Shown: piece after piece, positions 1-56,312 of the stretch | How positions within the stretch are numbered: the stretch's first letter is position 1 | Layout of the letters: every line of letters starts with the position of its first letter | Source: Octopus sinensis | Taxonomy: Eukaryota | Assembly (NCBI RefSeq): GCF_006345805.1 | Contig: NC_042999.1 | Coordinates: 158,906,001-158,970,000 of the forward strand | Reading direction: 5' to 3' | DNA: 64,000 nt | Translations under genes and position numbers: made by a program | Notes under the pieces: model-generated | What the model saw: the letters and a program-made list of their open reading frames with translations, nothing else | What the model was told of the DNA's origin: nothing | The model's database searches: none

Positions 1-549
1 GAACCTGGTATTTCTAGTCGCCCAGTTATATTTGCTTTTCCATTTTCTCTAAAATATTCTCACTGTTTTTTAGATCGTTCTCTCTCTTTTACACTATTAT
101 TCTTTATCCCTCTATTATTCCTATATAAATTTTCTGCCTCTACCTCACATACGCAAACACATATAATCAGTCAAATGTATACGATAACTCTCACATTTTC
201 GTTTTCATTATTACACTTGTACCATTATTTCAGCTAGAGTTTCCTTATCATAATCAATCTCTGACTCTTTCTGTCCCGATTTCTATTTCACTCTTTCAGC
301 GATACAGACCAAGACTTTTATATCTTTCGATTATATCTTTATCTTTACACCACTCGAAATGTCTCAGAATGTATTAAAATGTAATGAACTAAAGCAGAGG
401 CAGTTCCGTTGTCCGATATTTATTCAGAATTCAGAATTTCTAATCAAACTTCAGTTGCTCTTTCAATCAACTCTTAGATTCAGATTCTCATACTTCACAA
501 CATATTTCAGTTAAGGTAACAAATGTTAAAGTGTATGCATAATTATACA

Positions 550-680
550 AGAATATACAACACACACATATACATAACACACAAATACATAACCCACATA
601 TATACATACATACATACATAAATACATATCTTTCTATTTATACACACACACACTCACACACACACACACACACACACACG
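550..680. repeat. (CA)n/(TACA)n compound microsatellite
   Basis: Visible ACACAC and TACATACA runs. Confidence 0.9.
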
Positions 681-959
681 TATAATACTGCTTTTAATTT
701 ATAATCAACGGTTAAATTTATAGGGAGACGATGTTTTCGTATCTTTGTGATGAGAGTTATTTATACTCAAGCTGTGAAGGTTAGGCGGCAGTCGATTATA
801 TTGTATGAATCAAAATAGTGGAGAACCATTTATTTTCCGAAATCCAGAAAGATGAAAAACAATTTCAGTTGAGGCTGGTATTAGACAAAAACGTAGGTGA
901 ATAAATGGCGCCAAACAATCTGAACGGCACCGTAAGTCTCCTTTTACTGCCATATGTAT

Positions 960-972
960 GTACGTCTGTGTG

Positions 973-1035
<63 letters not shown>
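960..1035. repeat. (TA)n(GA)n compound microsatellite
   Basis: Visible dinucleotide runs; source of the spurious ERERER/LSLSLS ORFs. Confidence 0.95.
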
Positions 1036-1038
<3 letters not shown>

Positions 1039-1233
1039 ATAGTGGTACAACAATGCACCAATGTTTACTGGAAATAGCAGTCGATAATGTATATATAAAG
1101 GAAATAAGTAACAAGGATAACAAGGTATTAATGCACTAATGCCTTGACATCCTTGTTACTTATTTGCTTTCTACTCACCTTACCGGACAGACTTGGTGCC
1201 TGAACTTAAATACCTAATTGAACCGATTCTCAA

Positions 1234-1770
<537 letters not shown>

Positions 1771-1919
1771 ATATATATATATATATATATATTAACAATT
1801 AAGGAACGCCATAATAGGCCATCACAGCATCACCCACTAGAAATAACAGCCAAAGCTTCTACCGCAATAAAGATTAATTCCGTAAACAGGAGAAAATTAA
1901 AAAAAACATTTACCCTGTA

Positions 1920-2026
1920 ATTTCTTGTACGGTATACCGTTTCATCCGCTGTTTAATGGTAAACTAACCTGATTAAATTAAATCAAGCCAATCCTCCATA
2001 AGCCCTCGGATTCTTCAGCAAGAAAT
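1920..2026 (-). ncRNA. Type I hammerhead ribozyme, array copy L1
   Basis: Reverse complement of ATTTCTTG-CTGAAGA-ATCCG-(58 nt)-CGGAT-GAA-ACGG-TATA-CCGT-A-CAAGAAAT; predicted cut between 1928 and 1927. Confidence 0.88.
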
Positions 2027-2415
2027 AGCTCAAGTCGGGACAGATATATACACGAGGCATACCCAATCTTGCCAAGTCAATATCTGACCTAAAATTTTCA
2101 AATCGTCGCACTCGCGCCAAATTTATCGGCAGCAAATAGATATCAGCCGTCGATTCCATTACGGAATTAACCAAAAAATTCATAATTAATCAATATAGGG
2201 TGGCAAGGAAAATTTTGTAGAATTTTATTGCCACCAGCGGCTCAGTGGGAAAAAATTTAAATAGTCATGGACCATTTTTAAGTTCAACATTAACAATTAA
2301 GGAACGGCCATAATAGGCCATTCACCCACTAGAAATAACAGCCAAAGCTTCTACTCTACCGCAATAAAGATTAATTCCGTAAACAGGAGAAAATTAAAAA
2401 AACATTTACCCTGTA

Positions 2416-2522
2416 ATTTCTTGTACGGTATACCGTTTCATCCGCTGTTTAATGGTAAACTAACCTGATTAAATTAAATCAAGCCAATCCTCCATAAGCC
2501 CTCGGATTCTTCAGCAAGAAAT
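2416..2522 (-). ncRNA. Type I hammerhead ribozyme, array copy L2
   Basis: Same motif with all core positions intact. Confidence 0.88.
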
Positions 2523-2908
2523 AGCTCAAGTCGGGACAGATATATACACGAGGCATACCCAATCTTGCCAAGTCAATATCTGACCTAAAATTTTTCAAAT
2601 CGTCGCACTCGCGCCAAATTTATCGGCAGCAAATAGATATCAGCCGTCGATTCCATTACGGAATTAACCAAAAAATTCATAATTAATCAATATAGGGTGG
2701 CAAGGAAAATTTTGTAGAATTTTATTGCCACCAGCGGCTCAGTGGGAAAAAATTTAAATAGTCATGGACCATTTTTAAGTTCAACATTAACAATTAAGGA
2801 ACGGCCATAATAGGCCATTCACCCACTAGAAATAACAGCCAAAGCTTCTACCGCAAATAAAGATTAATTCCGTAAACAGGAGAAAATTAAAAAAACATTT
2901 ACCCTGTA

Positions 2909-3015
2909 ATTTCTTGTACGGTATACCGTTTCATCCGCTGTTTAATGGTAAACTAACCTGATTAAATTAAATCAAGCCAATCCTCCATAAGCCCTCGGAT
3001 TCTTCAGCAAGAAAT
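2909..3015 (-). ncRNA. Type I hammerhead ribozyme, array copy L3
   Basis: Same motif with all core positions intact. Confidence 0.88.
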
Positions 3016-3284
3016 AGCTCAAGTCGGGACAGATATATACACGAGGCATACCCAATCTTGCCAAGTCAATATCTGACCTAAAATTTTCAAATCGTCGCAC
3101 TCGCGCCAAATTTATCGGCAGCAAATAGATATCAGCCGTCGATTCCATTACGGAATTAACCAAAAAATTCATAATTAATCAATATAGGGCGCAATATAGG
3201 TGCGACGATTTGAAAATTTTAGGTCAGATATTGACTTGGCAAGATTGGGTATGCCTCGTGTATATATCTGTCCCGACTTGAGCT

Positions 3285-3391
3285 ATTTCTTGCTGAAGAA
3301 TCCGAGGGCTTATGGAGGATTGGCTTGATTTAATTTAATCAGGTTAGTTTACCATTAAACAGCGGATGAAACGGTATACCGTACAAGAAAT
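3285..3391 (+). ncRNA. Type I hammerhead ribozyme, array copy R1
   Basis: Stem I 3285-3292/3384-3391; CTGAAGA 3293-3299; stem II 3300-3304/3363-3367; GAAA 3368-3371; stem III ACGG/CCGT with TATA loop; GTA triplet, cut after 3383. Confidence 0.9.
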
Positions 3392-3775
3392 TACAGGGTA
3401 AATGTTTTTTTAATTTTCTCCTGTTTACGGAATTAATCTTTATTTGCGGTAGAAGCTTTGGCTGTTATTTCTAGTGGGTGAATGGCCTATTATGGCCGTT
3501 CCTTAATTGTTATGTTGAACTTAAAAATGGTCCATGACTATTTAAATTTTTTCCCACTGAGCCGCTGGTGGCAATAAAATTCTACAAAATTTTCCTTGCC
3601 ACCCTATATTGATTAATTATGAATTTTTTGGTTAATTCCGTAATGGAATCGACGGCTGATATCTATTTGCTGCCGATAAATTTGGCGCGAGTGCGACGAT
3701 TTGAAAATTTTAGGTCAGATATTGACTTGGCAAGATTGGGTATGCCTCGTGTATATATCTGTCCCGACTTGAGCT

Positions 3776-3881
3776 ATTTCTTGCTGAAGATCCGAGGGCT
3801 TATGGAGGATTGGCTTGATTTAATTTAATCAGGTTAGTTTACCATTAAACAGCGGATGAAACGGTATACCGTACAAGAAAT
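3776..3881 (+). ncRNA. Type I hammerhead ribozyme, array copy R2 (1-nt deletion at base of stem II)
   Basis: CTGAAGA-TCCG instead of CTGAAGA-ATCCG; cut predicted after 3873. Confidence 0.8.
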
Positions 3882-4263
3882 TACAGGGTAAATGTTTTTT
3901 TAATTTTCTCCTGTTACGGAATTAATCTTTATTTGCGGTAGAAGCTTTGGCTGTTATTTCTAGTGGGTGAATGGCCTATTATGGCCGTTCCTTAATTGTT
4001 AATGTTGAACTTAAAAGTGGTCCATGATTATTTAAATTTTTTCCCACTGAGCCGCTGGTGGCAATAAAATTCTACAAAATTTTCCTTGCCACCCTATATT
4101 GATTAATATGAATTTTTTGTTAATTCCGTAATGGAATCGACGGCTGATATCTATTTGCTGCCGATAAACTTGGCGCGAGTGCGACGATTTGAAAATTTTA
4201 GGTCAGATATTGACTTGGCAAGATTGGGTATGCCTCGTGTATATATCTGTCCCGACTTGAGCT

Positions 4264-4370
4264 ATTTCTTGCTGAAGAATCCGAGGGCTTATGGAGGATT
4301 GGCTTGATTTAATTTAATCAGGTTAGTTTACCATTAAACAGCGGATGAAACGGTATACCGTACAAGAAAT
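4264..4370 (+). ncRNA. Type I hammerhead ribozyme, array copy R3
   Basis: Intact motif; cut predicted after 4362. Confidence 0.88.
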
Positions 4371-4755
4371 TACAGGGTAAATGTTTTTTTAATTTTCTCC
4401 TGTTTACGGAATTAATCTTTATTTGCGGTAGAAGCTTTGGCTGTTATTTCTAGTGGGTGAATGGCCTATTATGGCCGTTCCTTAATTGTTAATGTTGAAC
4501 TTAAAAATGGTCCATGACTATTTAAATTTTTTCCCACTGAGCCGCTGGTGGCAATAAAATTCTACAAAATTTTCCTTGCCACCCTATATTGATTAATCAT
4601 GAATTTTTTGGTTAATTCCGTAATGGAATCGACGGCTGATATCTATTTGCTGCCGATAAACTTGGCGCGAGTGCGACGATTTGAAAATTTTAGGTCAGAT
4701 ATTGACTTGGCAAGATTGGGTATGCCTCGTGTATATATCTGTCCCGACTTGAGCT

Positions 4756-4862
4756 ATTTCTTGCTGAAGAATCCGAGGGCTTATGGAGGATTGGCTTGAT
4801 TTAATTTAATCAGGTTAGTTTACCATTAAACAGCGGATGAAACGGTATACCGTACAAGAAAT
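4756..4862 (+). ncRNA. Type I hammerhead ribozyme, array copy R4
   Basis: Intact motif; cut predicted after 4854. Confidence 0.88.
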
Positions 4863-5159
4863 TACAGGGTAAATGTTTTTTTAATTTTCTCCTGTTTACG
4901 GAATTAATCTTTATTTGCGGTAGAAGCTTTGGCTGTTATTTCTAGTGGGTGAATGGCCTATTATGGCCGTTCCTTAATTGTTAATGTTGAACTTAAAAAT
5001 GGTCCATGACTATTTAAATTTTTTCCCACTGAGCCGCTGGTGGCAATAAAATTCTACAAAATTTTCCTTGCCACCCTATATTGATTAATTATATATATAT
5101 ATATATATATATAATGTTATATTCCAGGATAGCCATTCCTTCTCTTTTTTTGCCAAATA

Positions 5160-5290
5160 AACACACGCACTAACTGATGTACGCAAATCTTTCGTCACAC
5201 ATCTGTGACATCTTCAGCGACACTTTCCGTTCTCGTGTATGCTCCTGCTCCGCTTAGTCTATCCTTATCTGCGCATGCGTTTTCATTTGT
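5160..5290 (-). mobile_element. PLE pseudo-LTR relic with partial hammerhead-like motif
   Basis: Reverse complement is homologous to 6640-6830; contains CTGAAGA-T-GTCAC-AGATGT-GTGAC-GAAA (5217 to 5190). Confidence 0.55.
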
Positions 5291-5422
5291 ATCTGTGTAT
5301 ATATGTGTGCGCATGTGTGTCTCTTCGTTTGTGTGTGTGTGATTTGTGTGTCTGTGTTTGTGTCTGTGCATGTGCTTGCGTGTGCGTACGCGCGTCTATG
5401 TGTTTCGCATGTGTGCTTACAT

Positions 5423-5811
5423 ACTCTTTTACTCTTTTACTTTTTTCAGTCATTTGACTGCGGCCATGCTGGTGCACCGCCTTTAGTCGAGCAAATCGAC
5501 CCCGGGACTTATTCTTTGTAAGCCCAGTACTTATTCTATCGGTCTCTTTTGCCGAACCGCTAAGTAACGGGGACGTAAACACACCAGTATCGGTTGTCAA
5601 GCAATGCTAGGGGGGACAAACACAGACACACAAACATATACATATATACGACAGGCTTCTTTCAGTTTCCGTCTACCGAATCCACCCACAAGGCATTGGT
5701 CGGCCCGGGGCTATAGCAGAAGACACTTGCCCAAGATGCTACCCAGTGGGACTGAACCCGGAACCATGTGGTTGGTTAGCAAGCTACTTACCACACAGCC
5801 ACTCCAGCGCC
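5423..5811 (-). mobile_element. tRNA-derived SINE, family A
   Basis: Reverse complement of the 1343-1770 family with (TACTCTTT)n tail. Confidence 0.9.
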
Positions 5812-6254
5812 TATATATATATGTCTATATATATATATGGGCTTACTCACTAGACTGCTTATATCCGTACCCTTTATATTGTTGTTATCGTTGTCGTCCT
5901 TAGTGGTACTTTGACTCTCTCCTCACCTATGTTTTCGCTCCTTTTGCTGCTACTGCTGCTGCTCTTGATCCTTGCTTTTGATATTGTTCTTGTGTCTTTC
6001 TGTGTTTGTATGTTTGATGGCATTGTTATAGTGGTTATTGCTGTTGTTGTTGCCGTTGTTGGTGTTGTTCATGCTGTTGTAGTTTCTGAAGTTGATGTGT
6101 GTTTGTTTGTATGTCTATATAGGTTTGCTTACTATGTTTTTGGTACCCGCGCCCTTTATATAGTATAATTTTTTGTTTCATATATTTTTCATAAGTATGT
6201 GCATATTTGTCTCTTGTGTATGTATTACATTGTTTGTACCTGTGTTCTTTCCCC

Positions 6255-6835
6255 TATGTGTCGTGTGTAGTCCTCGTGTTGTTTTGTGTAGGAGAGCGAA
6301 CAGGCGACCACTGGTGAGGGCTCAAAGAGAAAAAAAGGCTCGTCAGTGCTCTACCAGCATGCTCAAGCAGAACATAGAGGCTCGGTTAATAACATAGAAG
6401 TTAAGGTGTTATTAACGCATTGAACTAAAACTACACTTAGATTACAGAGACCAGACATGTAATAAGAGAGACCGAGCTTCAACAGAAAACACGAATGGAA
6501 CAATAACACCCCCACCATCACCACATGCACACACACACACACACAGACACACACACACACACACACACAAAACACACTGATAATCACACATATGCACACA
6601 AACGCACACACACACACCAAACACACATATACAGACATAGGCGCATGCACAGATAAGGATGCACATCAACGACGGACAAAATGGACTAAGTGGAGCAAGA
6701 GTATACACGAGGAAGGTGAGTGTCACTGAAGAGGTCACAGATGTGTGACGAGAGATTTCCGAACAATGGAAACGAATTGAAATACGAATTATAATAAACG
6801 AGTGAAGAACGAATATATAGTGCGTGTGTCTAGTT
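6255..6835 (+). mobile_element. Penelope-like element 3' relic (GIY-YIG C-terminus, CA tract, pLTR)
   Basis: By-eye translation gives xVGE..RPLVR..E then SALYQHAQAEH..IEVKVL..PSFNRKHEW, like PLE GIY-YIG C-termini; hammerhead-like motif at 6726-6753. Confidence 0.6.
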
Positions 6836-6863
6836 GGCAAAAAAAAGAAAAGAAATACAACAA

Positions 6864-7055
6864 GGCGGCGAGATGGCAGAAATATTAGCACACCAGATGA
6901 AATGCTTAGCGGTATTTCGTCTGTCTTTACGTTTTGAGTTCAAATTCCGCCGAGGTCGACTTGGCCTTCCATCCTTTTCTTGGGTCGATCTAATCGACTG
7001 GCTCCAAAAATGTCGGCCCTTGTGCCAAGAGTACAAAAGAATATCTGTTTGAAAA
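6864..7055 (+). mobile_element. tRNA-related SINE, family B
   Basis: GGCGGCGAGATGGCAGAAAT...GAGTTCAAATTCCGCCGAGGTCGAC; many copies in the window. Confidence 0.85.
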
Positions 7056-7755: not shown

Positions 7756-7816
<61 letters not shown>

Positions 7817-10217: not shown

Positions 10218-10679
10218 GTACACATTAATATTATAATAAGCCGTACCGGAAAATGATTATTTTTAGAGGTTAACCTGGCTTTGTATCTATAAATTTTGTT
10301 GTATCTGGAGAAGGCGGTTATGTCTGCAGCTAATTGTTTTCGGATTATTGGTCAAGATTGGAACTTATATAAGGTATATTATATTTCACCTTATGGTTAG
10401 GTTTAATATAGTGTATATTTTTATTTGTTTCTATTGTGATCATTACCATTAACTGTCTGACAATGTTTATAAATTTTTCCAAACACTATCCATTGTGAGC
10501 TATTTTATAGCATAATTTATAGCCTGTATAGCGAATTATCTTCTGAAATAAGTTAACGATGTATAATTCGCTCGGGTCTCAAGCTTCAGTCCAATCGTAT
10601 GACGTTATTAAACAACTTCAAGTCGAAACGAATTATCGTCAATTTTTCAAGGATCGCCCAGCATACAGAATAATATTAA

Positions 10680-12482: not shown

Positions 12483-13166
12483 AAAAATCTGTTTTTAAGC
12501 TGGTAACTATTACTTTTTTCTTTCAAATTACTGATCTGGTAGTCGCAAGGGTTAATTTTTGCCTGTTAAAAAGTAAACTTTTCTTCAGACAAACCCTCCA
12601 TCAATAACCCGTAGAAAGTTGAAAAGATTTGTTAGTAAATAAGTAGATTTTCTTCTGTTCAATCTTTACGTAATAAATCTTGAAACGTTTTGGATATTTT
12701 CAAACCTACTTTTCGTTTCATACTGGAAATATCTAATTGAAAGTGTTTCAAATCCTTGTTTGTGTGAAAACACTTTTACGGTATCTGAAAGTGAACTTGC
12801 TTTCATTGGTCGTGTTCGTATACGTTTGTAGAACCAATGCATCTATCATATTCTTACGATGAGGACTTCGGCCGTTTCACTTAGACATTGAATCTCTTCT
12901 TTGTGGATTGCATCAGAATATTTAACGAAGTTTTCAAATATGCCCGTTTAATTTTCTAACTATTCGCAAATTCGGACGGGATCAATGTTTCATAGATAAA
13001 GGAGTAAAATAGGAATTTAAGAAAATGTGAGTTCATAAACGAAGAAATTTCTCGATATATAAGTTGAATTTGCGTAAGTGAAGTTTCCACTGTTGTTACT
13101 CTGCGCAAACCTTGTTGATTATTCATGCAATTGATGAAATTGCTTCTACAGTATTCTTTATTTTTT

Positions 13167-13482
13167 TACTTGTTTCAGTTATTTGACTGCGGCCATGCTG
13201 GAGCACCACCTTTAGTCGAACAAATCGACCCCAGGACTTATTCTTTGTAAGCCTAGTACTTATTCTATCGTCTCTGTTGCCGAAATGCTAAGCTATGGGG
13301 ACGTAAACACACTAACATCGGTTGTCAAACAATGGTAGGTGGACAAATACAGACACACAAATGCATACATACATTAATGTATATACGACGGGTTTCTTTC
13401 AGTTTCCGTCTACCGAATCCACCCACAAGGCTTTGGTCGGCCCGACGCTATAGTAGAAAACACTTGCCCAAGGTGGCACGCT
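13167..13482 (-). mobile_element. SINE family A, 5'-incomplete
   Basis: TTGACTGCGGCCATGCTGGAGCACC...CACTTGCCCAAGGTGGCACGC. Confidence 0.85.
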
Positions 13483-14179
13483 GTATAAAGCACAGATATA
13501 CAGAAATATTAACATATAATTGTTAATTGATTACTAACCGAATAAAATGCTGCACAAACGCATATATTTTTGCGAAGAACAGGCATTACATTCAAAATCC
13601 TATCATAGTTCAATATCTTCAGTATCGTAGACAAAATCAGAGGTAGTGAATTCTTACAGACACTTCATTCATCATTTATTAAGTAATTTACAAATACCAC
13701 CTGGCTAATATAGTTTATTTCAAGCATAATCGATTTGCTATAATCAATGCATTTCTCGTTTTGCATAAATGATATTCTAGGTATGAAAATATCTATGCGT
13801 AAATAGAATACACCACGTATGTTCTGTGTATAGAAATAGATAATGTTATAAGCATTTACCAACATTATCAGATCCAAGTGATCTGGGATCTTATCAATTT
13901 CATATTAATATTCTTACCTTGTATCATGTTGCTTCCGTTCTTCATTTGTTTTGTGTAAGAGTAATGATGTAAGGTGGCTCAGCTTCTGGCAAAAAGAAAA
14001 AGGAAAAAGAAATTCTACATCATCTAAACACTATTATTCGCCAATGTCTGACAATCGATCTATCTATAAATCAAAAAAAACATTTGGGTTTCATCCCGAC
14101 TCATAAAGCCGTTAGCCCGGTTTCCAAGTCGTTGTGGCTCATATATTCGTCCCTGTCACCTGTATTTTTTTAATGTCAT

Positions 14180-16160: not shown

Positions 16161-17276
16161 ATGGAATACCAAAATTACGAAGATTCAGAGGCATATTCTA
16201 ACCTCACCAACCAATATACCTCCGACGGGCCGCTGGATTATGATGACTCTACGAAAGGATCAATCGAAAATCTAATCATCGGATTTCTCCGGAGCTACGT
16301 GAATCCGTTAATATCTACGGTTGGAATCATTGGAAATTTAATCTCAATTTGGGTGTTTTCCGCGAAAGGTCTACGAAAATTATCATCATCAGTTTATGTC
16401 CAAGCCGTACTAGTATCTGATACATTTTTCTTGGTTACAATTTTAGCAGTATGGTTGGAATCATTCAACTACATGGCAATGCATGTAAATGGAATTTGCC
16501 AAGGAAATATTTATTTGTCATATGTGAGCAGTTTCTTGTCTGTTTGGTACGTTGTATGTATTACTATTGAAAATTACATTACCATATGTCACCCACTGAA
16601 ATTAAAAACTGTGTGTACTTTTAAGCGCGCTCGAATCACCACGCTAACTTTTGCTTTCGCAGGGCTTGTCATGTTTTCCGTCATCATACCCATAACGAAA
16701 CCACAGAAGCCTTTATATTCTCCTCATAATAGTTCCGACAAGCTCGTCTGTAAAACTATTGTAGAATATACAAATTTAATGAATATTCTTACCTATGTTG
16801 ATACGGTTATTACCATTCTCTTACCCATGATTGCAATTGTTGGCTTAATTTCCATGATTATCGTGGAAACCATTCGCTCAGTGCACAAGAAACAAATTCG
16901 TTTAGCCAATAAAGAAAATCAGTCCAAAAAACTCTCTGACGTACCACAGGTACGAGTCGCCAAATTGCTTTTTGCTATATCTATTTCATTCCTGCTATTG
17001 AACTTACCAAGCTACTGTGCACGCTTGGTGTATATTTTTGTGCCTTATGCATTTCCACACGATAGCATAACCAGTTTCACTGTATATCAATGTTTACTAC
17101 ACATTAGCTATTCCAGTTTTGCATTGAAATTTTTCATATTGTATATATTCAGTGGAAATTTTCGAAAAGTTTTATTCAAAAAATTGTTTTGTTGTTTCCC
17201 ACACTTAAGTACCGATACTCGAGCAACTGAAAGAATAAAGTTAACTACTCCCGCATTCGATATGGTTCATTCGTGA
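16161..17276 (+). CDS. Class A (rhodopsin-like) GPCR, orphan peptide-receptor type (FMRFamide/SPR/GPR139-142-like grouping), 371 aa, single coding exon
   Basis: Seven hydrophobic segments; TM1 GIIGN, ICL1 LRKLSSSVY, TM2 LVSD, TM3 Cys (GICQ) with ENYITICHP, ECL2 Cys (LVCK), TM5 ILLP, TM6 LNLP, helix-8 SGNFRK; N-terminal NLT sequon. Confidence 0.93.
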   Translation: MEYQNYEDSEAYSNLTNQYTSDGPLDYDDSTKGSIENLIIGFLRSYVNPLISTVGIIGNLISIWVFSAKGLRKLSSSVYVQAVLVSDTFFLVTILAVWLESFNYMAMHVNGICQGNIYLSYVSSFLSVWYVVCITIENYITICHPLKLKTVCTFKRARITTLTFAFAGLVMFSVIIPITKPQKPLYSPHNSSDKLVCKTIVEYTNLMNILTYVDTVITILLPMIAIVGLISMIIVETIRSVHKKQIRLANKENQSKKLSDVPQVRVAKLLFAISISFLLLNLPSYCARLVYIFVPYAFPHDSITSFTVYQCLLHISYSSFALKFFILYIFSGNFRKVLFKKLFCCFPHLSTDTRATERIKLTTPAFDMVHS

Positions 17277-18788: not shown

Positions 18789-20462
18789 CACATATCTACT
18801 GTTTACGTGAATTGGTGTTGAGTTATTAAAGCAATGATACTCTCCAATAAGACGTAGATTATTAAGTTGACTATTAAGGAAACAATTTAGAAAAATCAGT
18901 CTCAAAGCATGAAAACTGCTTAATAGTTTTTTTTATTTACTCTTAGTACTCTGCATGCAGATGCCATTCAGAAGTGGGTGACTTAATCTTTTGTCTTCGG
19001 TCAGCCATTTGCTGTTCATATAAAACAGTTGGGTTAATCTACGATGCTGCCAGCCTTGAGGTTTTTGACCTAATGTTGTCATTATTCTTTTGAAGCTACC
19101 GTATAGGTAGAAATGCTGTAACACTACATTAAATCTAGTAGTCTTTGATTTTCACACAAATTGCTTGTAGAATTTCTTTGGATGCCCTTATATCCTGACA
19201 TTGATTTTACTTTCTTCTAACAAATCTGGCAATTTGGTCCTTTATAAGAAAATATTTTTATCATTCCTAAAATGTATTGAATGGATGCAATAGTGTCTGA
19301 TTTGTACAGATCGATGACTACCCATCGTTTCCGACAGATTCTGATCTTGGACCAGTATATTAACCATATTTTCAAGCAAATATAAATCAAGAGTAGTTCT
19401 ATGATTTGACATTACAGAACTACTCTACATCATAAAATTATTATGCCGTGAGTTTCCATATTCAATTCGTGTTGAACTCAAACAGCAATGTATCAGTAAC
19501 TATTTTTTTATTTATAGACTAGTCAGAGAAGGAGGGCAAATGTTCCTGGTATATATGGTGGGCCTCCAAGATTACTAAAGAGAGGGGGGAAGAAATTCTG
19601 ATTCCTTCATCATTCTCTAATCAATTGTCTTATTCAAATACTTGACTGAACTCTACTAGGGACATCTAAGAGCTACGAATTTATCTTAAACATGTCACGA
19701 TTTAAGTCTATTACTCAAGATTAAATACAAGCAAACCAGCGGGAGTTATCAGCTTTCCCCTTACCCTGTTTTACTCTGAATGAATGAGTTAGCCTGAGAA
19801 TATGTAGAAGATACTTACTCAAATAAATTTGCAGCTGTTTCTAATAGAATCTTTTGTTTGCGAATAAAATTTGGTGCAACGTACAAAACAAAACACTGTA
19901 ATTATTGAAACGTACAAATGGTTTCTTCGACAATGACCTACTTCAAGAGGGGTGACTCGTTAACGTTATTAGCAACATATTTCCTGTAAGGACAGAGACC
20001 TTATCTCTTAATCCTTCCTTAAGCTCACACTTCTCTTCTTTAAACTGGTTTTAAAACTTCGATAAAGGATTAGTTGCTATATACGAAGAATTAAACCTCT
20101 ATATAAATAGATTCTCTTGCGATTTTCCCGAAACACATGTATACTTAAATACTGTTAACTCTGTCTAGTTTTTGTAGAGACAGGAAATTGAGAGTTAAAG
20201 CTCATCCAGGATAGAATACTGTGTATTTCACGTTACTTTCCTTAAACAAGGACTCATAAAGAAATTTCTAATGAAGTCTGCAGATCTTTTTTTATTAGGA
20301 CTGGTGGGTGGTAATACTTCGAGGTACTCAGTTGTATATCATAATCACAGGCAATATCATAGTCAGCATATTGCAGAACTGAGTACAGGATGTGATCCGA
20401 TGACACTTCGATATCTTTACCGCTTACCTTTCCATTAGTTTAACGTCCGCTGTGTTCTGTGT

Positions 20463-20866
20463 TACTCTTTTACTCTTCTACTTGTTTCAGTCATTTGACT
20501 GCGGCCATGCTGGAGCACCGCCTTTAGTCGAGCAAATCGACCCCGGGACTTATTCTTTGTAAGACCAGTAGTTATTCTATCGGTCTCTTTTTGCCGAACC
20601 GCTAAGTGACGGGGACGTAAACACACCAGCATCGGTTGTCAAGCAATGCTAGGGGGACAAACACAGACACACAAACACATACACACACACTTACATATAG
20701 ATATACATATATACGACAGGCTTCTTTCAGTTTCCGTCTACCAAATCCACTCACAAGGCCCGGGGCTATAGCAGAAGACACTTGCCCAAGATGCCACGCA
20801 GTGGGACTGAACCCGGAACCATGTGGTTGGTTAGCAAGCTACTTACCACACAGCCACTCCTGCGTC
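20463..20866 (-). mobile_element. SINE family A, near full length
   Basis: TACTCTTT tail through CCACACAGCCACTCCTGCGTC. Confidence 0.9.
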
Positions 20867-21300
20867 TAAGTGTTATCCACTTTTCCTATATAAATATATG
20901 AAACAAAAGCAAGAAGGTTACCAAAATCACAAAAGCAGCATAAAAAGGAGAAGGCTAATTTCATTGTCGACCAAAGAATTAAAAAACATTTGAGAACATT
21001 AGAAACGTAATAGTCTATCTTTTAGTAAGAGAATTAAAATCAGAACAATTTTTTACATCTCACCATAAATTCACTTACGTACAAATAAGTAGCTGTTTTT
21101 GTTTGTTTCCTCTCAATTTCCAGAGGCTTACAAAAGACAAATATTTGAATATTATTGAAAAATTGGAAACCCCATTTACAATAGGAATGCATTGACATTA
21201 GAAATATGAAACAAATTATACTTGCAGATGTGTAAAGATCATTAACTAAATGTGAATGTGTTTGTGCTTAAAGAAATCCAATGAGAATATCACTAAGTAA

Positions 21301-24941: not shown

Positions 24942-25360
24942 GGCCAACAGACCAGATATAGTTGTCAGAGATCATGAAGAAAAAAAATGCTTTCTAATTG
25001 ATGTATCAATACCGGCAGATGACAACGTGTCTCTAAAAGAAATGGAGAAATTCTCAAAATACAAAGACCTGGAAATAGAGGTAACTAGAATGTGGAATCT
25101 GAAAACAGAAACAATTCCTATCATAGTAGGTGCATTAGGCATGATAAAAAAATATTCAGACAAATACATAACAAAAACACCAGGACTTACAAACACATAT
25201 AACATACAGAAAATTGCACTACTAGGCACTGCACACATCCTACGCAGAACACTTTCCATACAATAACCATCAGAGCATCAGAACAAATCACAGCACATAC
25301 CCAAGACACACAGAGCTGCGCTCGGTAGTGAAGTGAAAGCACGCTATAAAAATAAAACTA

Positions 25361-25363
<3 letters not shown>
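24940..25363 (+). mobile_element. R4/Dong-type LINE family Y, 5'-truncated (RLE domain and 3' UTR)
   Basis: ANRPDIVVRD..CFLIDVSIPAD..KFSKYKDL; near-identical to 48421-48842; embedded in (TAA)n. Confidence 0.9.
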
Positions 25364-25430
<67 letters not shown>

Positions 25431-25448
25431 GTAATAATAATAATAATA

Positions 25449-25490
<42 letters not shown>

Positions 25491-28044: not shown

Positions 28045-28435
28045 ATATTTTTTGTACTCGTTTCAGAAGTGAGACTGGCCATGAAGCATTTTTAGTCCAA
28101 TGAAGCCACCTCCAGTTCCTGTTATTTTAAGCTTGGAAGCTATTCTTTTACCGAACAGCTAAGTTATGGGTGTGTAAACACCAGACCACTGGTATTCAAG
28201 CGGTGGTGTGGAGATACACACTCACACACATACACACACACACAACAACATCAACACACACAGATGTCATTTATGTATACGACGTACTTCTTTTATTCCT
28301 TTCTACCAAATGCACTTGCAACGGATTGGTTTGCTCGAGGCTATAGTAGAAGACACTTGCTCAAGATACCACGCAGTGGGACTAAACTTAGAATCATGTG
28401 TTTGGTGAGTAAGATTCTTACCACACAGCCACGCC
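28045..28435 (-). mobile_element. SINE family A, degenerate
   Basis: GCTATAGTAGAAGACACTTG...CCACACAGCCACGCC. Confidence 0.8.
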
Positions 28436-35656: not shown

Positions 35657-35842
35657 AGCTGTGTAGTAAGAAGATTGCTTCCCAGCCACATGGTTTCAGG
35701 TTCAATACTACTGTGCGGTAACTTGAGTAAGTGTCTTCAACTATAGCCTCGCGCTAACCAAAGACTTGTGAGTGCATTTAGTAGACGGAAGCTAAAAGAA
35801 ATCTGTCATATATATATATATATATATATATATATCTATATT

Positions 35843-35910
<68 letters not shown>

Positions 35911-36124
35911 TCATGTGTGTGTGTCTGTGTTTTTCTCCCCGCCTTCGCATGACAACCGATGCTAGTGTGTTTACGTCCCCATGACTTATCTGCTTGGCAC
36001 AAGAGACCGATAGAATAAGCACTAGGCTTACAAAGAATAAGTTCTGGGATCGATTTCTTCGACTGTAACCCTTTAAAACGGTGCTCCGGCATTGCCACAA
36101 TCAAATGACTGAAAGTAAAAGAAT

Positions 36125-36126
<2 letters not shown>
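35657..36126 (+). mobile_element. SINE family A
   Basis: GCTGTGTAGTAAGAAG...GGTGCTCCGGCATTGCCACAATCAAATGACTGAAAG. Confidence 0.85.
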
Positions 36127-36167
<41 letters not shown>

Positions 36168-44913: not shown

Positions 44914-47900
44914 CGTTTAAGATGTAAGAAGGAAAATTCAGAGCTCCGAAATCTATCCACAAACATCGAAAACAAGGACATCCTATGGAGCCAAAGTTTT
45001 ACTAACAAAGAATTGGACTGTATCCGAGTAAGTAATACTAATTGAAATGTATTACTATTTTCGAAACGAAATGATGTATTTTGACTCGATATCATCTCCG
45101 GCTCTAACGCAACACATGTAAACATGCGTGGAACATCACGATCATCTCCGACCCAAACACCATGTACAAAGGAACTACGAAGAAATTAAATGCCACCGAT
45201 ACTATTCAACCCAAGAATAACAATCGAGCGGTACGTACATTAAACCTACACAAAAAAATGTACGAAAAACTACACGTGCGAAATAATGTGACAACAGAAA
45301 TAAACGGACCGGTACCCTACGAAAATGACGACCGTCAAAATAATGGGCCGGACGTTGTACCTCATGTCCCGCAAATAAAACCCAAAAGACGTAAATGGAC
45401 ACGTGAGGAATACATTCCTATCTTACACGCATACTTCACAGCAGTACTCTACCCAAAAAATGAAAATACAACAACACATACATATAAAATATGGAAGGAA
45501 AATAATAGAGATATAGACTTGGATACAGCAATGAACCCTAACGTAGCTAACGTACGAAGATACATTCTCAACACAAAAAAAATATCAGAAATAGAAATAG
45601 AACACCTAAAAGAAAACATACACCAGGAAAATGTAGATAGAAGCCACACAACAATGCCCAATAATATAAACACTGAAACTGTAAAACACGAAGACAAACG
45701 CAACATTCCCAACAAACACGATGTAAACAACGAAGGGGAGCCTAATGATTATGATAATATAAAAAATAAAATAATCAAAGAACTGAAAACCACAGAGCTC
45801 AAAATGGACCACCGACCATACCTCCCAAGAATCAAAATAAACAAAATAACAACACCTATTATAAACAGCATAAACCTAGCCGTCACTGAACTGATAGCCA
45901 CTGAATAAAAAAAAAGTGATATCACTGAGCTAAATAACCTAATATACGCAGCAGCCACAGCAGCCACAAAGAAGCTGGATATTCACCCAAACCCGCCCAA
46001 ACAGGAGTACCACCACCCAAACAAACCCTGTGGATAAATAACATCCAAAGCAAAAAAAAAAATTAGAAAAGACCTGTCGATTCTTAATGAAATCAGCAAA
46101 CAATCAACGCTACTGAGCAACAAAAAGAGAACAAAAATACTCCGCAAATATAACATCACAGAGAAAGATTTGCCTGAAATAAAAGAAAAGCTGAAGCAAG
46201 ATCCTTGCCAAAGCACAAAGGATCCGCCGGTACAAGAAACGCCAACGCTTCTTTGAAGAAAACAAAAAGTTCAACTCTAACCAAAAAGTTCTACCAAGAA
46301 CTGGGAAAAAATAAAATAGAAGTCACTGCAGCACCAACGGCAGAAGAATTGGAAGAATTCTGAGGAGAAATATGGTCGGCGAACGAACCACCAAAAAAAA
46401 GGAGTATCAGAATAACAAACTCGGCATCTGAACAACTTTGGACCCCCATAACAACTGAAGAGGTCACCCAGGCACTGCAAAGACTAAGCAACTGGAAGGC
46501 ACCTGGCATGACAAGATCCCCAACTTCTGGTTGAAATATCTAACAGGAATGCACAAAAAGCTGGCTGAAAACTTTAACAAAGTACTAGCAGAGCCAGAGA
46601 CAATGCCTGAATGGCTCACGAAGGGGAAAACCATCTTAATTCCCAAATCAAATGAAACAGAAAAACCAGAAAACTACAGACCAATAACTTGCCTCCCTAC
46701 TATGTTCAAGGCATTTACTGCAGTGATATCACAAAGGCTGAACAAGCACCTGGACGAAAACAAACTGTTCCCAGAAGAGCAGAAATGATGCCGCAAAGGC
46801 TCATATGGCTGTAAAGATCAACTAATGATTAATAAAGCCATAACTGAAGACAGCCACAGAAAGAAGAAAGGCCTCAGTATGGCCTGGATTGACTACAAAA
46901 AGGCGTTTGATAGCATCCCCCACACATGGATCCTCGAAACACTAGCCATTAACAAAGTAGCACCAACAATCATAAAATTCATAGAGCACTCTATGAATAA
47001 ATGGCAAACAGTCCTACACCTCCAAACAAAAGAGGGACTCATGAAAACCATAGACATCCCCATTAGAAGAGGAATATTCCAGGGAGACACGCTCTCTCCA
47101 CTCCTTTTCTGCTTGGTACTGTCACCTCTATCTGATATGCTAAATAGAACTGGATGCGGATATAAATGTTACGGCAAAACGATCAGCCCCTTTTATATAT
47201 GGATGACCTAAAACTATACGCTGCAAATGAGAAACAGCTGGAAACACTATTAAAGACAGTTCATGGATTTACCAAAGAAATAGATACGAAATTTGGATTA
47301 GAAAATGCGCCAAAGTAACCATGAAAAGAGGAAAACTAGTTAAGAGTAACAACATCACACTAGATAAAACCAATGAAATAAAAGAATTAGACCAAAGCCA
47401 AACTTACAAATACTTAGGAGTCCATGAACTAGATAAGACACAACACACACACAAATGAAAGAGAAAATAAAAAAGAATATTATAGACGAGTTAGATCAAT
47501 ACTAACACAGAGCTCAATGCTAAAAACAAGATAATAGGTATCAACACTTTAGCTGTCCCAGTTATAAGTTACAGTTACAATATCCTTAACTGGACACGAA
47601 ATGAACTGACCAAAATAGATAGGAACACAAGAAAAATAATGACAGGATCTAGGATGCATCACCCAAAATCTGACATAGAAATACTATATATACAAGGTAT
47701 AGAAGGTGGTAGAGGCCTTATACAGCTGGAAAACTACTATAAATAACCACCATAGGACTGCAAAAATATCTACTTCAGAAGGAAGGAAAACTGATCCAGA
47801 TAGCGGCAAAACACGAGCAAAACAAAAAACTGTTCTCAGTATTTAAGGAAGCTGACAAATACAAACAAGAAATCATACCACCTAATAAACATGAAGAAGA

Positions 47901-51589: not shown

Positions 51590-54500
51590 GCCGACTACGG
51601 CTGCTATAATGGTACGATTATAATTGTAACGGCAATGATGGCCGTCTCCCCACGAGCCAATCAAAGCTAAAAAATGATAACATTATCGTAGCACCAAAAT
51701 GTTTTTGGAAACTAAAAGGAAAACTAAATCAGTATACCAAATCGCTTGTCCTATGGTTAATCTGGAAGCGCGTCCCCCAGGGAAGAGCCAGCCTGGGATC
51801 GAAAAGTCATCAACTGGCACAAACTCTTCTCCGAATACGGACATGGATGGTCACTTGAACGGGAAATCCCCCAACTCGAGCCCTCCAAGTTCACCACCAC
51901 AACCACCACAGACAGAAAAATGTAAGCGGAACAAATGGACCCGAGAAGAGTATAAAGAAGTAATATACGCTTATTACTATGCATTAGGTAGGCCATCTCA
52001 AGAGAGACACACCGCAAACTCTTACAGTATATGGAGAACACGGAATCAAGACAGTAGGCCCTATTTGGACGAGAACAAATTAGCAAATGTGAGGAGGGAT
52101 ATCCTTAGAAATAACAGACTCACAGACAGTGAAATAAGCGCGATCAAGCACGCAACGGAAAATGACATAAATATAAGACACAAATGAAATGAAGAATCAG
52201 ATGAACAGTATAGCCCGCCACGAGGCTTAATTGAAAGACTGCCATCTGACCAAAGTACGCAAAGGCCTGAAGATACAAGAAATTCTATTGTACCTGTTAA
52301 AGATAGCCAGGAAAACGAAAAAACAACAGTAACTGAAGATCTCGCATTTGCTGAAGAACACAGAGAGTCTATGGCAGAAATGAGGCAGAAAATCCTGAAT
52401 ACGCTTGAAGTTGTAAAACATACAAGTATGAATGATAGAGAACCAATTCATAAACTCTCAAATACAAACCAAAATAAAAAACAAATCCAAATTGGCAACT
52501 AGGTAACAAATGAAATAATACGAGAATTAAAACCTGATTTTACTGAGTTAAATGAAATTAGTTACGCTGCTGCTAGGGCAATTGAAACCAGCTGTATGCC
52601 CCCAAAAAAACAAAGAAAACAAAACCTGGGAAGAAATCAAACCTGGAGAAGTAAAATTGAAAAAGAGATTGAATTTATGAGAGGGGAAATATCAATATTA
52701 AATGAACTAATATGTGGAAATGATGTAAGATCCAGAACAGGAAGAAAGATGAAGAGAAAATTTGGATCCTCACCAAGAGAAGAACTGATATCAATAAAAG
52801 AAACGCTGAAACAAAAAGTCCAAGCAAAAGCCCAAAGAATACGAAGATTTGAGAAGAGAAACAAGTTTTACAAGCAAAATAAGCTGTTCACATCCAATGC
52901 CAAAAAATTCTACAGAGAAATAGGGAAGGAGAAAGTAACCGTTAAAGACCCCCCTCCCATGGAAGAAGTTCAAAACTTTTGGGAAAGGATTTGGAGTGAC
53001 AAGAAGACGTACAACATAAAGGCAGACTGGATTATACAAACTGAAGGATCCTACCAAAATTTACAACAAGCATGGGAAGACATCACAATAGCAGACCTAA
53101 GAAAGGCACTCACGAAGGCCCATAATTGGAAATCCCCCGGTAAAGATAGGGTGCCAAATTTCTGGCTCGCATCGCTCCCGTGCGCACACGGTAAGCTAGT
53201 TCAGCTGCTCAATGGAATTTTGAGAGACCCAAAGAAAACACCTGAATGGTTAGCAAGTGGCATTACTTACCTACTCCCAAAGAATAACGAAACCAACCTT
53301 CCAAAAAACTATCGGCCTATAACCTGTCTATCCACCACGTATAAAATCCTAACATCTATCCTGGCGGAGAAAACATGCATTCATGGAGAACAACGATATT
53401 TTCCCCATTGAACAAAAAGGGTGCCGCCGAGGCTCTTACGGATGCAAAGATCAACTGCTAATCAATCGTATGATCCTTGAGAACTGTCACAACAAGCGCA
53501 GAAATCTCAGCACCGCATGGATTGACTACAAAAAAGCCTTCGACAGTATACCGCATCCATGGATCTTCAGATCGCTGGACATCTTCAAAATTTCCCCTGT
53601 GATTTCAAACTTCCTGAAGCACAATATGTCGTTGTGGAATACGAATCTCCAATTATACCACTCTACTGGAGTACTTGCCTCAGAAAATATAAACATCAAC
53701 TGTGGAATTTTTCAAGGTGACTCACTTTCACCTTTAATATTCTGCATAGCCCTAATACCCCTTACAAGTGAATTAAACAGAACAGGCTTTGGGTATAAAA
53801 TTGCCAATAAAAAAATAAGCCACCTATTTTATATGGATGACTTAAAACTTTATGGTAAAGACAATAATGAACTTGAAGGCCTATTGCGCACCGTGAAAGC
53901 ATTCAGCGATGACATCGGGATGGAGTTTGGACTTGAGAAGTGTGCCAAGGCCACTTTCCAGAAAGGGAAAGTGAAGACCACAAATTCAGTCGTGTTAGAT
54001 GTTGACACAGTCATAAGAGAGCTTGAGCAAGAACAAACATACAAATATTTAGGGATAAATGAAGGCTCTGGTATTCAGCATGCAAGCATGAAAGAGAAAA
54101 TCAGGAAGGAATGTTATAGGAGAGTTCGTGCAGTCCTGAAATCTGAACTAAATGCACGTAACAAGGTGTTAGCTATAAATTCCTTAGCAGTTCCAGTTGT
54201 TACTTATAGCTACAATGTGTTGAACTGGAATATGAGTGAAGTAAAGAATATAGATAGAAAAATACGCAAGCTGCTGAGTTGTAATAGGATGCACCACCAA
54301 AGGCAGACGTAGATCGCCTTACTTTCCCAGAGCCCAAGGAGGTCGAGGCCTGATCCAATTTGAACTATCTTACAAAACAACCACAATTGGACTGGCCAAA
54401 TATCTCGAAATATCGAATGACTGGATGCTAAAGCTCGTGGAAAATCACGAGAGACGAAAGAAGCTTCATTCTATCATAAAGGAAAGCAAAAAATTTGCTA

Positions 54501-55550
54501 TTGATCTCGTGCAGGATACCCAAACTGAACAACCCGAGGGAAGTACGGCAACTATTGTTGCAAAGAAGGTGAAAATGATGACAATGAAAAAAGCGCACGA
54601 GCAATTGGCTGATAGGTGGGAGGAGAAACCTCTGCACGGCAAATATGTGACCCGCAGCAAACAAGCTGATGTTGACCAGAAGCAAACCATCAGTGGCTAC
54701 GGAGCCCAGGGCTAAAAGCAGAGAGCGAAGGTTTCATCCTGGCTGCTCAAGATCAAAGCCTATTAACCCGGAACTACCAGGCCAATGTGATGAAAAATGG
54801 AGCAGACCCAAAATGCCGATTCTGCAACGACATGATTGAAACAGTGGACCACCTAATCTCTGGATGTAAATTCTTAGCACCAGTGGAGTATAAATTAAGA
54901 CATGACAGAGTTGGCCAATATCTTCACTGGCTAATAAGTCGGCATTACAATATCAAAACTGCCGACAAGTGGTATAATCACCACCATGAGGCTGTAACTG
55001 AAGGAGAAAATGTAACCATTCTGTGGGACTTTCCAGTACATACAGACCGAACCATCAAGGCCAATAAACCAGATATTATTGTGAAAGACCAAAACAATAA
55101 AGTTTGCTTATTGATCGACATGAGCATCCCCTGTGATCATAATATCTCAGCGAAACAGTTTGACAAGCTCAGAAAATATAAAGACCTACTCATTGAAATT
55201 GAGAAAATGTGGCATCTCAAGGCGGTTACAGTGCCAGTGATCGTAGGAGCACTAGGAATGATCAAGAAGGGAACCGAAAATTATATGAGAATGATCCCTG
55301 GCTTACCATCCCTGCAAGAAGTGCAAAAGATTGTCTTAACTGGTACATCACACGTATTGAGAAGAGCATTGTCGATGTGAGAACTGTTGCTGCTCATGTA
55401 TTTTAATTTAACTTAAAAAATAAAAAAAATGAACGAACTACTGAGTTTGGTTTAATGGCCTACCATTGTATACTATGAGTTTCTTTGCCCTAGGAGTCGG
55501 GAAGACACTCGGCAAGAAATGGAAGCAAATTTGAAAGAAGAAAAAAAAAA
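51590..55550 (+). mobile_element. Full-length R4/Dong-type non-LTR retrotransposon, family W, disrupted
   Basis: ORF fragments 51699-55380: RNKWTREEYKEVIYAYY; WIDYKKAFDSIPH, GIFQGDSLSP, LFYMDDLKLY; CRFCNDMIETVDHLISGC; KPD..LLIDMSIP..KLRKY; poly-A then (TAA)n. Confidence 0.93.
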
Positions 55551-55578
55551 GTAATAATAATAATAATAATAATAATAA

Positions 55579-56312
55579 CGACATGATTGAAACAGTGGAC
55601 CACCTAATCTCTGGATGTAAAGTCTTAGCACCAGTGGAGTATAAATTAAGACATGACAGAGTTGACCAATATCTACACTGGCTAATAAGTCGGCATTACA
55701 ATATCAAAACTGCCGATAAGTGGTATAATGACCACCCTGAGGCTGTAACTGAAGGAGAAAATGTAATGATTCTGTGGGACTTTCCAGTACTTACAGACCG
55801 AACCATCAAGGCCAATAAACCAGATATTGTTGTGAAAGACCAAAACAATAAAGTTTGCTTATTGATCGACATGAGCATCCCCTGTGATCATAATATCTCA
55901 GCGAAACAGTTTGACAAGCTCAGAAAATATAAAGACCTACTCATTGAAATTGAGAAAATGTGGCATCTCAAGGCGGTTACAATACCAGTGATCGTAGGAG
56001 CATTAGGAATGATTAAGAAAGGAACCGAAAATTATATGAGAATGATCCCTGGCTTACCATCCCTGCAAGAAGTGCAAAAGATTGTCTTAACCGGTACATC
56101 ACACGTATTGAGAAGAGCATTGTCGATGTGAGAACTATTACTACCCATGTATTTTAATTTAACTTTAAAAAAAAATGAACGAATTTTTGAGTTTAGTTAA
56201 ATGGCCTAGCAATGTATACTATGACTTTCTTTGCCCTAGGAGTCGGGAAGGCACTCGGCAAGAAATGGAAGCAAATTTGAAAGAAGAAAAAAAAAAAAAA
56301 AAAAAAAAAAAA
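55579..56312 (+). mobile_element. R4/Dong-type LINE family W, second copy 5'-truncated at the zinc knuckle
   Basis: Close match to 54826-55550; ORF 55583-56131. Confidence 0.9.

Follow-up and report, generated by a model that had tools for sequence, protein, structure and literature searches.

A head-to-head array of hammerhead-bearing tandem repeats in Octopus sinensis, a probable non-LTR retrozyme

Non-LTR retrozymes are short tandem repeats of low G+C content that carry a type I hammerhead ribozyme and no long terminal repeat (LTR) features; their RNAs occur in linear and in circular form and are highly self-paired, and the repeats share their host genomes with Penelope-like elements (PMC7229834). 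Published retrozyme units measure 150–450 bp (PMC7229834) or 51–972 bp (preprint 10.64898/2026.07.22.740005). Penelope-like elements characteristically insert into microsatellites such as (TA)n and leave partial tandems with, next to them, a 5'-truncated copy in inverse orientation (PMC8557442). Retrozymes have already been described in another mollusc and across Metazoa, and the octopus array reported here would extend this known class. A 64-kb stretch of Octopus sinensis DNA (the window, to which all positions refer) was analysed; positions 1791–5090 are a 3.3-kb head-to-head inverted array of one ~492-bp unit (units 489–496 bp), which, judged by its sequence, is most probably a non-LTR retrozyme, i.e. 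a non-coding, ribozyme-bearing tandem repeat. A cephalopod host had been proposed in an initial annotation of the same stretch, and window 6161–27276 was found to be 100% identical to O. sinensis GCA_006345805.1 CM016861.1, in which the array is placed at CM016861.1:158,907,791–158,911,090.

The initial annotation had also described 1791–5090 as an array of ~490-nt units with an inverted left arm, with which Tandem Repeats Finder and reverse-complement comparison both agree. Tandem Repeats Finder returned a left block (1791–3189, period 497, 2.8 copies, 97% matches) and a right block (3200–5089, period 492, 3.9 copies, 99% matches), and the two blocks are mutually reverse-complementary, with matching stretches as long as 579 nt (99% identity) or 313 nt (100% identity). 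The array and its borders are made up as follows.

1771–1790, no strand: (AT)10 microsatellite adjoining the outer 3' end of the minus arm (direct reading)
1791–3189, minus strand: minus-orientation arm, 2.8 units (Tandem Repeats Finder, nhmmer with a unit profile, unit alignment, junction mapping)
3190–3199, no strand: 10-nt filler (cgcaatatag) at the head-to-head junction (centre compared with in-phase units of both arms)
3200–5090, plus strand: plus-orientation arm, 3.9 units (Tandem Repeats Finder, nhmmer, alignment, junction mapping)
5091–5112, no strand: (AT)11 microsatellite adjoining the outer 3' end of the plus arm (direct reading)

Unit alignment resolved five full monomers, counted from cut to cut, and four partial ones: the minus arm holds the full monomers 2916–2424 and 2423–1928 plus two partial, and the plus arm the full monomers 3384–3873, 3874–4362 and 4363–4854 plus two partial. 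Among these nine, 26 columns are variable, corresponding to ~16 mutational events, many of them homopolymer indels. Unit G+C content is 36.8%. Repeat searches of the array returned no terminal direct repeats beyond the units themselves.

Each unit carries the motif AUUUCUUG-CUGAAGA-AUCCG-(58 nt)-CGGAU-GAA-ACGG-UAUA-CCGU-A/CAAGAAAU, in which the slash marks the predicted cut. Stem I (AUUUCUUG with CAAGAAAU) has 8 bp and is open, which makes the motif type I; the base of stem II (AUCCG/CGGAU) has 5 bp and is lengthened by a 58-nt hairpin (68-nt region, 5+58+5); stem III (ACGG-UAUA-CCGU) has 4 bp and the cut site is GUA. Core positions are canonical throughout (C3 U4 G5 A6 A7 G8 A9, G12 A13 A14, A15.1–U16.1, A17 and C1.1–G2.1). 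The string ACGGTATACCGTACAAGAAAT occurs four times on the plus strand and three times on the minus strand, at exactly the positions where cuts had been predicted beforehand (3383, 3873, 4362 and 4854 on plus, with three copies on minus). A17 accordingly falls at 3383, 3873, 4362 and 4854 on the plus strand (spacing 490, 489 and 492 nt) and at 1928, 2424 and 2917, in plus-strand coordinates, on the minus strand (spacing 496 and 493 nt).

For an independent scan, a descriptor of our own (CUGANGA ... GAAA ... UH plus three helices) was run on both strands of the 64 kb. Six intact motifs were returned, each with stems I, II and III of 8, 5 and 4 bp, and no further hammerhead was found elsewhere in the 64 kb on either strand, even with the stems relaxed to 3, 2 and 2 bp. 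The opposite strand of the unit, said in the initial annotation to be free of a hammerhead core, contains no hammerhead by the descriptor and no ribozyme of any Rfam family, and the ribozyme is present once per unit and in a single polarity only. The seven copies are listed below.

1920–2026, minus strand: type I hammerhead, intact, predicted cut after A17 (complement of 1928); RF00163 21.4 bits, model 1–45, and descriptor
2416–2522, minus strand: type I hammerhead, intact, predicted cut after A17 (complement of 2424); Rfam and descriptor
2909–3015, minus strand: type I hammerhead, intact, predicted cut after A17 (complement of 2917); Rfam and descriptor
3285–3391, plus strand: type I hammerhead, intact, predicted cut 3383/3384; Rfam and descriptor
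3776–3881, plus strand: hammerhead with a 1-nt deletion (CTGAAGA-TCCG); alignment, unmatched by Rfam and descriptor
4264–4370, plus strand: type I hammerhead, intact, predicted cut 4362/4363; Rfam, descriptor and fold
4756–4862, plus strand: type I hammerhead, intact, predicted cut 4854/4855; descriptor, and RF00163 21.4 bits when the stretch was searched alone

The seven copies are ~99% identical and the hammerhead differs at one position only, the deletion in 3776–3881. There, one A is lost after CUGAAGA, which puts stem II out of register, so that the seven hammerheads initially annotated as complete are all found at their coordinates and six of the seven are intact. The deleted copy has no Rfam match even at E≤10 and is missed by the descriptor scan as well; going by its sequence it is probably impaired as a ribozyme, and the deletion could be a homopolymer error of the long-read assembly. 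A TATATAT string was also noted at 4243–4249, with equivalents in the other units, ~15–20 nt upstream of stem I; speculatively, this TATA-like motif upstream of each hammerhead could be part of an internal promoter.

Folding was predicted for the motif and for the whole monomer. Both the minimum-energy and the centroid fold of the 103-nt motif 4266–4368 are the hammerhead three-way junction (–32.9 kcal/mol; z –4.31; 0 of 200 shuffles equally stable), and in this prediction the 58-nt insert prolongs stem II cleanly and coaxially. For the circular monomer a folding energy of –142.5 kcal/mol (z –5.6 to –5.9) was obtained, with 59% of the bases paired. CUGAAG is tied up in a small alternative hairpin when the full monomer takes its minimum-energy fold, which is 3.8 kcal/mol more stable than the active hammerhead fold, so that the ribozyme is predicted to be accessible but not dominant. 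The difference in folding energy between the two strands (–142.5 versus –106.7 kcal/mol) was considered as a sign of RNA-level selection and rejected, since it is largely compositional: the strand is G+U-rich with 19 G–U pairs, and the two z-scores are similar.

Chance occurrence was assessed with 300 dinucleotide shuffles of the 64-kb window, scanned with the relaxed descriptor. The shuffles gave 0.28 relaxed matches per window and at most 14 bp of total helix, against 17 bp observed, and stems of 5, 4 and 3 bp were reached in none of the 300 (8, 5 and 4 bp observed). Since the seven copies are duplicates of one sequence, they were counted as one independent occurrence. With a factor of ~0.4 per added base pair, a rough extrapolation gives ~3e-5 such motifs per window.

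The retrozyme features that can be tested by sequence were all found in the array, namely one type I hammerhead per unit, always in the same polarity, head-to-tail repeats, low G+C, absence of credible coding capacity and a strongly self-paired monomer; the term retrozyme family, used in the initial annotation, is supported in its first word, whereas 'family' stands here for the one locus seen. The same annotation had called the monomer comparatively large, which does not hold, as the published size ranges given above include or approach ~490 nt. Each unit has, in the same frame, an open reading frame (ORF) of 58–69 aa (66 aa at 4599–4799, plus strand) that overlaps the 5' half of the hammerhead; a search of 5.8 billion proteins returned no homologue of the 66-aa product, an exact look-up returned no record, and the ORF is most likely spurious. 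Ribozyme pattern scans of metagenome and viral collections returned no match. No link of hammerheads or retrozymes to cephalopods was found in the searchable papers, and neither is mentioned in a detailed repeat annotation of the sister species O. vulgaris, which lists Penelope-like elements in 31 families with 336 young insertions (PMC13282606). Remnants of Naiad occur in Octopus spp. (PMC8557442).

Several observations weigh against a retrozyme. The comparison with the Rfam type I model, suggested in the initial annotation, aligned six copies end to end with Hammerhead_1 (RF00163, model 1–45; 21.4 bits, E 0.0065–0.09 in local searches), but this falls short of the curated gathering score (34), and with default settings no Rfam match is reported for the window, the hammerhead being seen in permissive mode only. 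The pair 10.1–11.1 is A–U and not the highly conserved G–C, and G10.1–C11.1 is the most conserved pair after 15.1–16.1 (PMC3088659). Covariation in the stems is absent among the seven near-identical copies, and depletion of variation in the hammerhead is not significant (one of ~16 events, 3.4 expected). The minus polarity of the monomer also reaches z –4.65, and z is –4 or lower for two of the 12 control segments taken from the repeat-rich window, so that self-pairing of the monomer is supportive only. A second copy of the unit was not found in the rest of the 64-kb window or in 22 kb of O. vulgaris (blastn, nhmmer), and no Penelope-like element was found in the window. Finally, the rough extrapolation above amounts to something on the order of one equally good chance motif per genome of 2.7 Gb.

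As regards the Rfam score, the shortfall coincides with the 58-nt loop II insert, the 6-nt stem III loop region and the A–U at 10.1–11.1, and there are no core mismatches. Natural hammerheads vary at 10.1–11.1, including an active U–U mismatch (PMC3088659) and compensatory changes in the cave-cricket repeat pDo500, so that the A–U pair counts as a deviation but does not exclude a hammerhead. A satellite or segmental tandem repeat of the ordinary kind, with a fortuitous hammerhead-like string and with neither cleavage nor an RNA life cycle, would be in keeping with the sub-threshold score, the lack of covariation and the extrapolated frequency, and chance matches to the hammerhead consensus are expected in very large databases (PMC3088659). 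Such a string would also need to have around it a tandem repeat that resembles retrozymes in size and composition, to adopt the hammerhead as its fold of minimum energy, with a 58-nt insert that cleanly extends stem II, and to belong to an array with retroelement-type junctions in a (TA)n target; a fortuitous motif is for these reasons very unlikely. With on the order of one chance motif extrapolated per genome, the motif alone is no proof, and the case for a retrozyme is made by motif, tandem context, fold and junctions together.

Tandem repeats of this kind could also be what is left of an autonomous Penelope-like element truncated at its 5' end, namely pseudo-LTR or terminal fragments. Penelope-like elements have hammerheads in their pseudo-LTRs; their insertion, for which microsatellites are a frequent site, yields partial tandems with inverted 5'-truncated copies (PMC8557442). 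A 2026 preprint (10.64898/2026.07.22.740005) places vertebrate retrozymes as sister to the pseudo-LTRs of these elements. The array, by contrast, has five monomers that are complete from cut to cut, its 3.3 kb contain no coding sequence for a reverse transcriptase or an endonuclease, and the reverse-transcriptase ORFs of the window are >40 kb away and have no GIY-YIG match. Stem III is here a stable 4-bp hairpin, whereas the hammerheads of autonomous Penelope-like elements are minimal and dimer-dependent. Truncated pseudo-LTRs are thus an improbable source of the array, and they would overlap with a retrozyme origin if retrozymes derive from pseudo-LTRs, as the preprint argues.

The junctions of the array could be read at nucleotide level. 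The array is bracketed by (AT)10 and (AT)11 and so lies inside a (TA)n microsatellite, which is not part of the tail of the neighbouring short interspersed element (SINE)-like sequence because another full-length copy of that element is without it. In RNA sense, the 5' ends of both arms meet at the centre, where they are cut off at unit positions 309 (plus arm) and 220 (minus arm), and the 10-nt filler between them partly repeats the preceding 8 nt, aatatagg. The 3' end of the minus arm is at 1791 (unit position 131, ...UGUUAAU) and that of the plus arm at ~5090 (unit position 235, ...GAUUAAU); both outward 3' ends stop exactly at the end of a UUAAU, of which there are eight per 492-nt unit. 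The (TA)n setting and the UUAAU 3' ends, neither of them remarked on in the initial annotation, strengthen the proposed link to Penelope-like elements, among which a (TA)n preference is reported for the Naiad clade, which is without canonical hammerheads (PMC8557442). Two different 3' ends on target microhomologies are as expected from a circular or oligomeric template without a fixed 3' end, as far as a single locus can indicate.

The head-to-head palindrome might be an artefact of long-read assembly, in which case the repeat and the ribozyme would be real and the inverted arrangement would not. The arms are 99–100% complementary, homopolymer indels of the sort that long-read consensus errors typically produce make up many of the differences among units, and assemblies are known to have difficulty with complex insertions of Penelope-like elements (PMC8557442). 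Yet the arms break at different unit positions with the 10-nt filler between them, they differ in copy number, and indels of 4 and 7 nt are found in the minus arm alone; so asymmetric a palindrome is unlike a simple fold-back of one read, and the artefact is judged quite unlikely. Permissive Rfam matches to the plant miRNA precursor families MIR8007 and MIR1512 at 3037–3263 on both strands (E down to 1e-13) were rejected, as they are far under the gathering scores (MIR8007, 75.8 bits versus 195); they arise because the palindrome centre can form a long hairpin. To the right of the array there is a further inverted repeat pair of 85 nt (5178–5262 and 6681–6765, 85% complementary), probably another dispersed repeat.

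For a retrozyme with these junctions the following course of events is proposed. Sense transcription of an arm, running outward from the centre or starting from a promoter within the unit, would yield an oligomeric RNA, in which the type I hammerhead of each unit would fold locally and cut after GUA. A host tRNA ligase of the RtcB type would then close the monomers into circles, with the predicted junction ...CCGUA/CAAGAAAU or, in longer form, ...ACCGUA/CAAGAAAUU (the slash marking the ligated ends). The reverse transcriptase of an autonomous Penelope-like element would copy the circle or oligomer by target-primed reverse transcription into tandem cDNA copies. At this locus the target would have been the (TA)n microsatellite, with both sides of the break primed on UUAAU microhomologies; priming from both sides would give two 5'-truncated arms, head to head. 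That the locus is the fossil of such an integration, i.e. of circular or oligomeric retrozyme RNA reverse-transcribed from both sides of a (TA)n break, with UUAAU priming on each side at another point of the circle, and of 5'-truncated cDNAs joined head to head, is put forward tentatively, as a possible but rather doubtful account.

In animals, abundant circular RNAs are known to arise without back-splicing from tandem repeats that carry ribozymes. If confirmed, a retrozyme in the octopus would add a neurobiological model group to the hosts of the class and provide a natural circular-RNA scaffold of ~490 nt, while leaving the general picture of such elements unchanged. The legible junctions offer a concrete test of the mobilisation of retrozymes by Penelope-like elements, which is still inferential; should further Octopus loci show the same pattern, there would for the first time be direct structural evidence of animal retrozymes being integrated by the Penelope-like machinery and lacking a fixed 3' end. 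The inverted arms, if read through, would form a near-perfect hairpin RNA of >1.3 kb, a possible substrate for small-RNA or ADAR pathways. The octopus is an animal noted for RNA editing.

The surroundings of the array were surveyed in the window and, in part, in O. vulgaris, from which O. sinensis split ~2.5 million years ago (PMC10700109). The O. vulgaris sequence used (GCA_951406725, a 22-kb locus, L003, around a G-protein-coupled receptor, GPCR, gene) begins at window ~6710, ~1.6 kb short of the array, and is 98–99% identical to the O. sinensis window apart from indels. Relative to this locus, ~290 bp at a low-complexity tract (window ~25181–25471) are present in O. sinensis only, and ~260–280 bp at two sites (window ~7775–7796 and ~10392–10414) in O. 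vulgaris only. The GPCR ORF (16161–17276, plus strand) is single-exon and encodes 371 aa of the rhodopsin family (Pfam 7tm_1), the protein being identical in both species; it is the sole annotated gene within its surrounding 21 kb, and the ORFs closer to the array are of low complexity.

A SINE-like element of ~430 bp ending in (AAAAGAGT)n was found at 1342–1770 (plus), 5422–5812 (minus) and 20462–20867 (minus), with at least nine further partial copies (e.g. 13157–13484, 28144–28435 and 35658–36128). The two copies that flank the array tail to tail (1342–1770 and 5422–5812) were considered as part of a larger palindrome and rejected as such, since the family has at least ten copies in the window; they are ~89% identical (blastn) and no closer to each other than to an unlinked copy. 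ARAGORN detected no tRNA-like part in 1–7000, which includes the head of the SINE-like element. Remnants resembling long interspersed elements lie at 45162–47211 and 51699–56131 (plus strand), with RVT_1 ORFs at E 2e-10 and 1.8e-23 and a nearly identically duplicated C-terminal ORF (54787–55380 and 55583–56131); as these RVT_1 ORFs have no GIY-YIG match, they give no sign of a Penelope-like element. A 326-aa ORF at 59907–60887 (minus strand) has no Pfam match and may be a transposon-derived fragment.

When the array is set beside known systems, plant LTR retrozymes share with it the kind of element, a non-autonomous retroelement, and their hammerheads excise a circular RNA intermediate (PMC4918200). 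Their type III hammerheads in ~350-bp LTRs, primer-binding site, polypurine tract and target-site duplications have no counterpart in the octopus array, and neither their high G+C content nor their mobilisation by Gypsy applies to it (PMC4918200). Penelope-like elements (PMC8557442) have in common with the array partial tandems, an inverted 5'-truncated neighbour, insertion into microsatellites, (TA)n among them, and a repeated part that includes a hammerhead; the array differs in having no reverse transcriptase/GIY-YIG ORF and no recognisable 30–40-bp 'tail'.

Newt satellite 2 and Schistosoma Sm-alpha, animal repeats in tandem or dispersed arrangement, contain the classical type I hammerheads, which have the same core and an open stem I. 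Stem III of the newt hammerhead is very short, and this ribozyme acts as a dimer. The 4-bp stem III with its UAUA loop predicted in the octopus motif should allow cleavage by a single hammerhead. In unit size the closest precedent is pDo500 of Dolichopoda cave crickets, at ~500 bp. This, too, is a tandem repeat with a hammerhead, which processes multimeric transcripts to monomers (PMC2837043, PMC2808323); the pDo500 hammerhead is compact, with 49 nt (68 nt as a double hammerhead), whereas the octopus motif spans 107 nt, and it has compensatory changes across species and proven cleavage, whereas the octopus motif is known from sequence.

Closely comparable, finally, are the metazoan non-LTR retrozymes of the coral Acropora, the mussel Mytilus and the axolotl (Cervera & de la Pena 2020, PMC7229834). 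The octopus unit is longer than these (~492 versus ~170–400 bp) and differs by the 58-nt extension of stem II and the A–U at 10.1–11.1, and while the described retrozymes are expressed as RNA, the octopus array is known here from the DNA of one locus. Shared are one type I hammerhead per unit, head-to-tail repeats of a few hundred bp, a G+C content below 45%, a non-coding and by prediction highly self-paired monomer (PMC7229834) and a host genus with Penelope-like elements, and with units of 350–390 bp the Mytilus retrozymes provide the precedent in a mollusc (PMC7229834).

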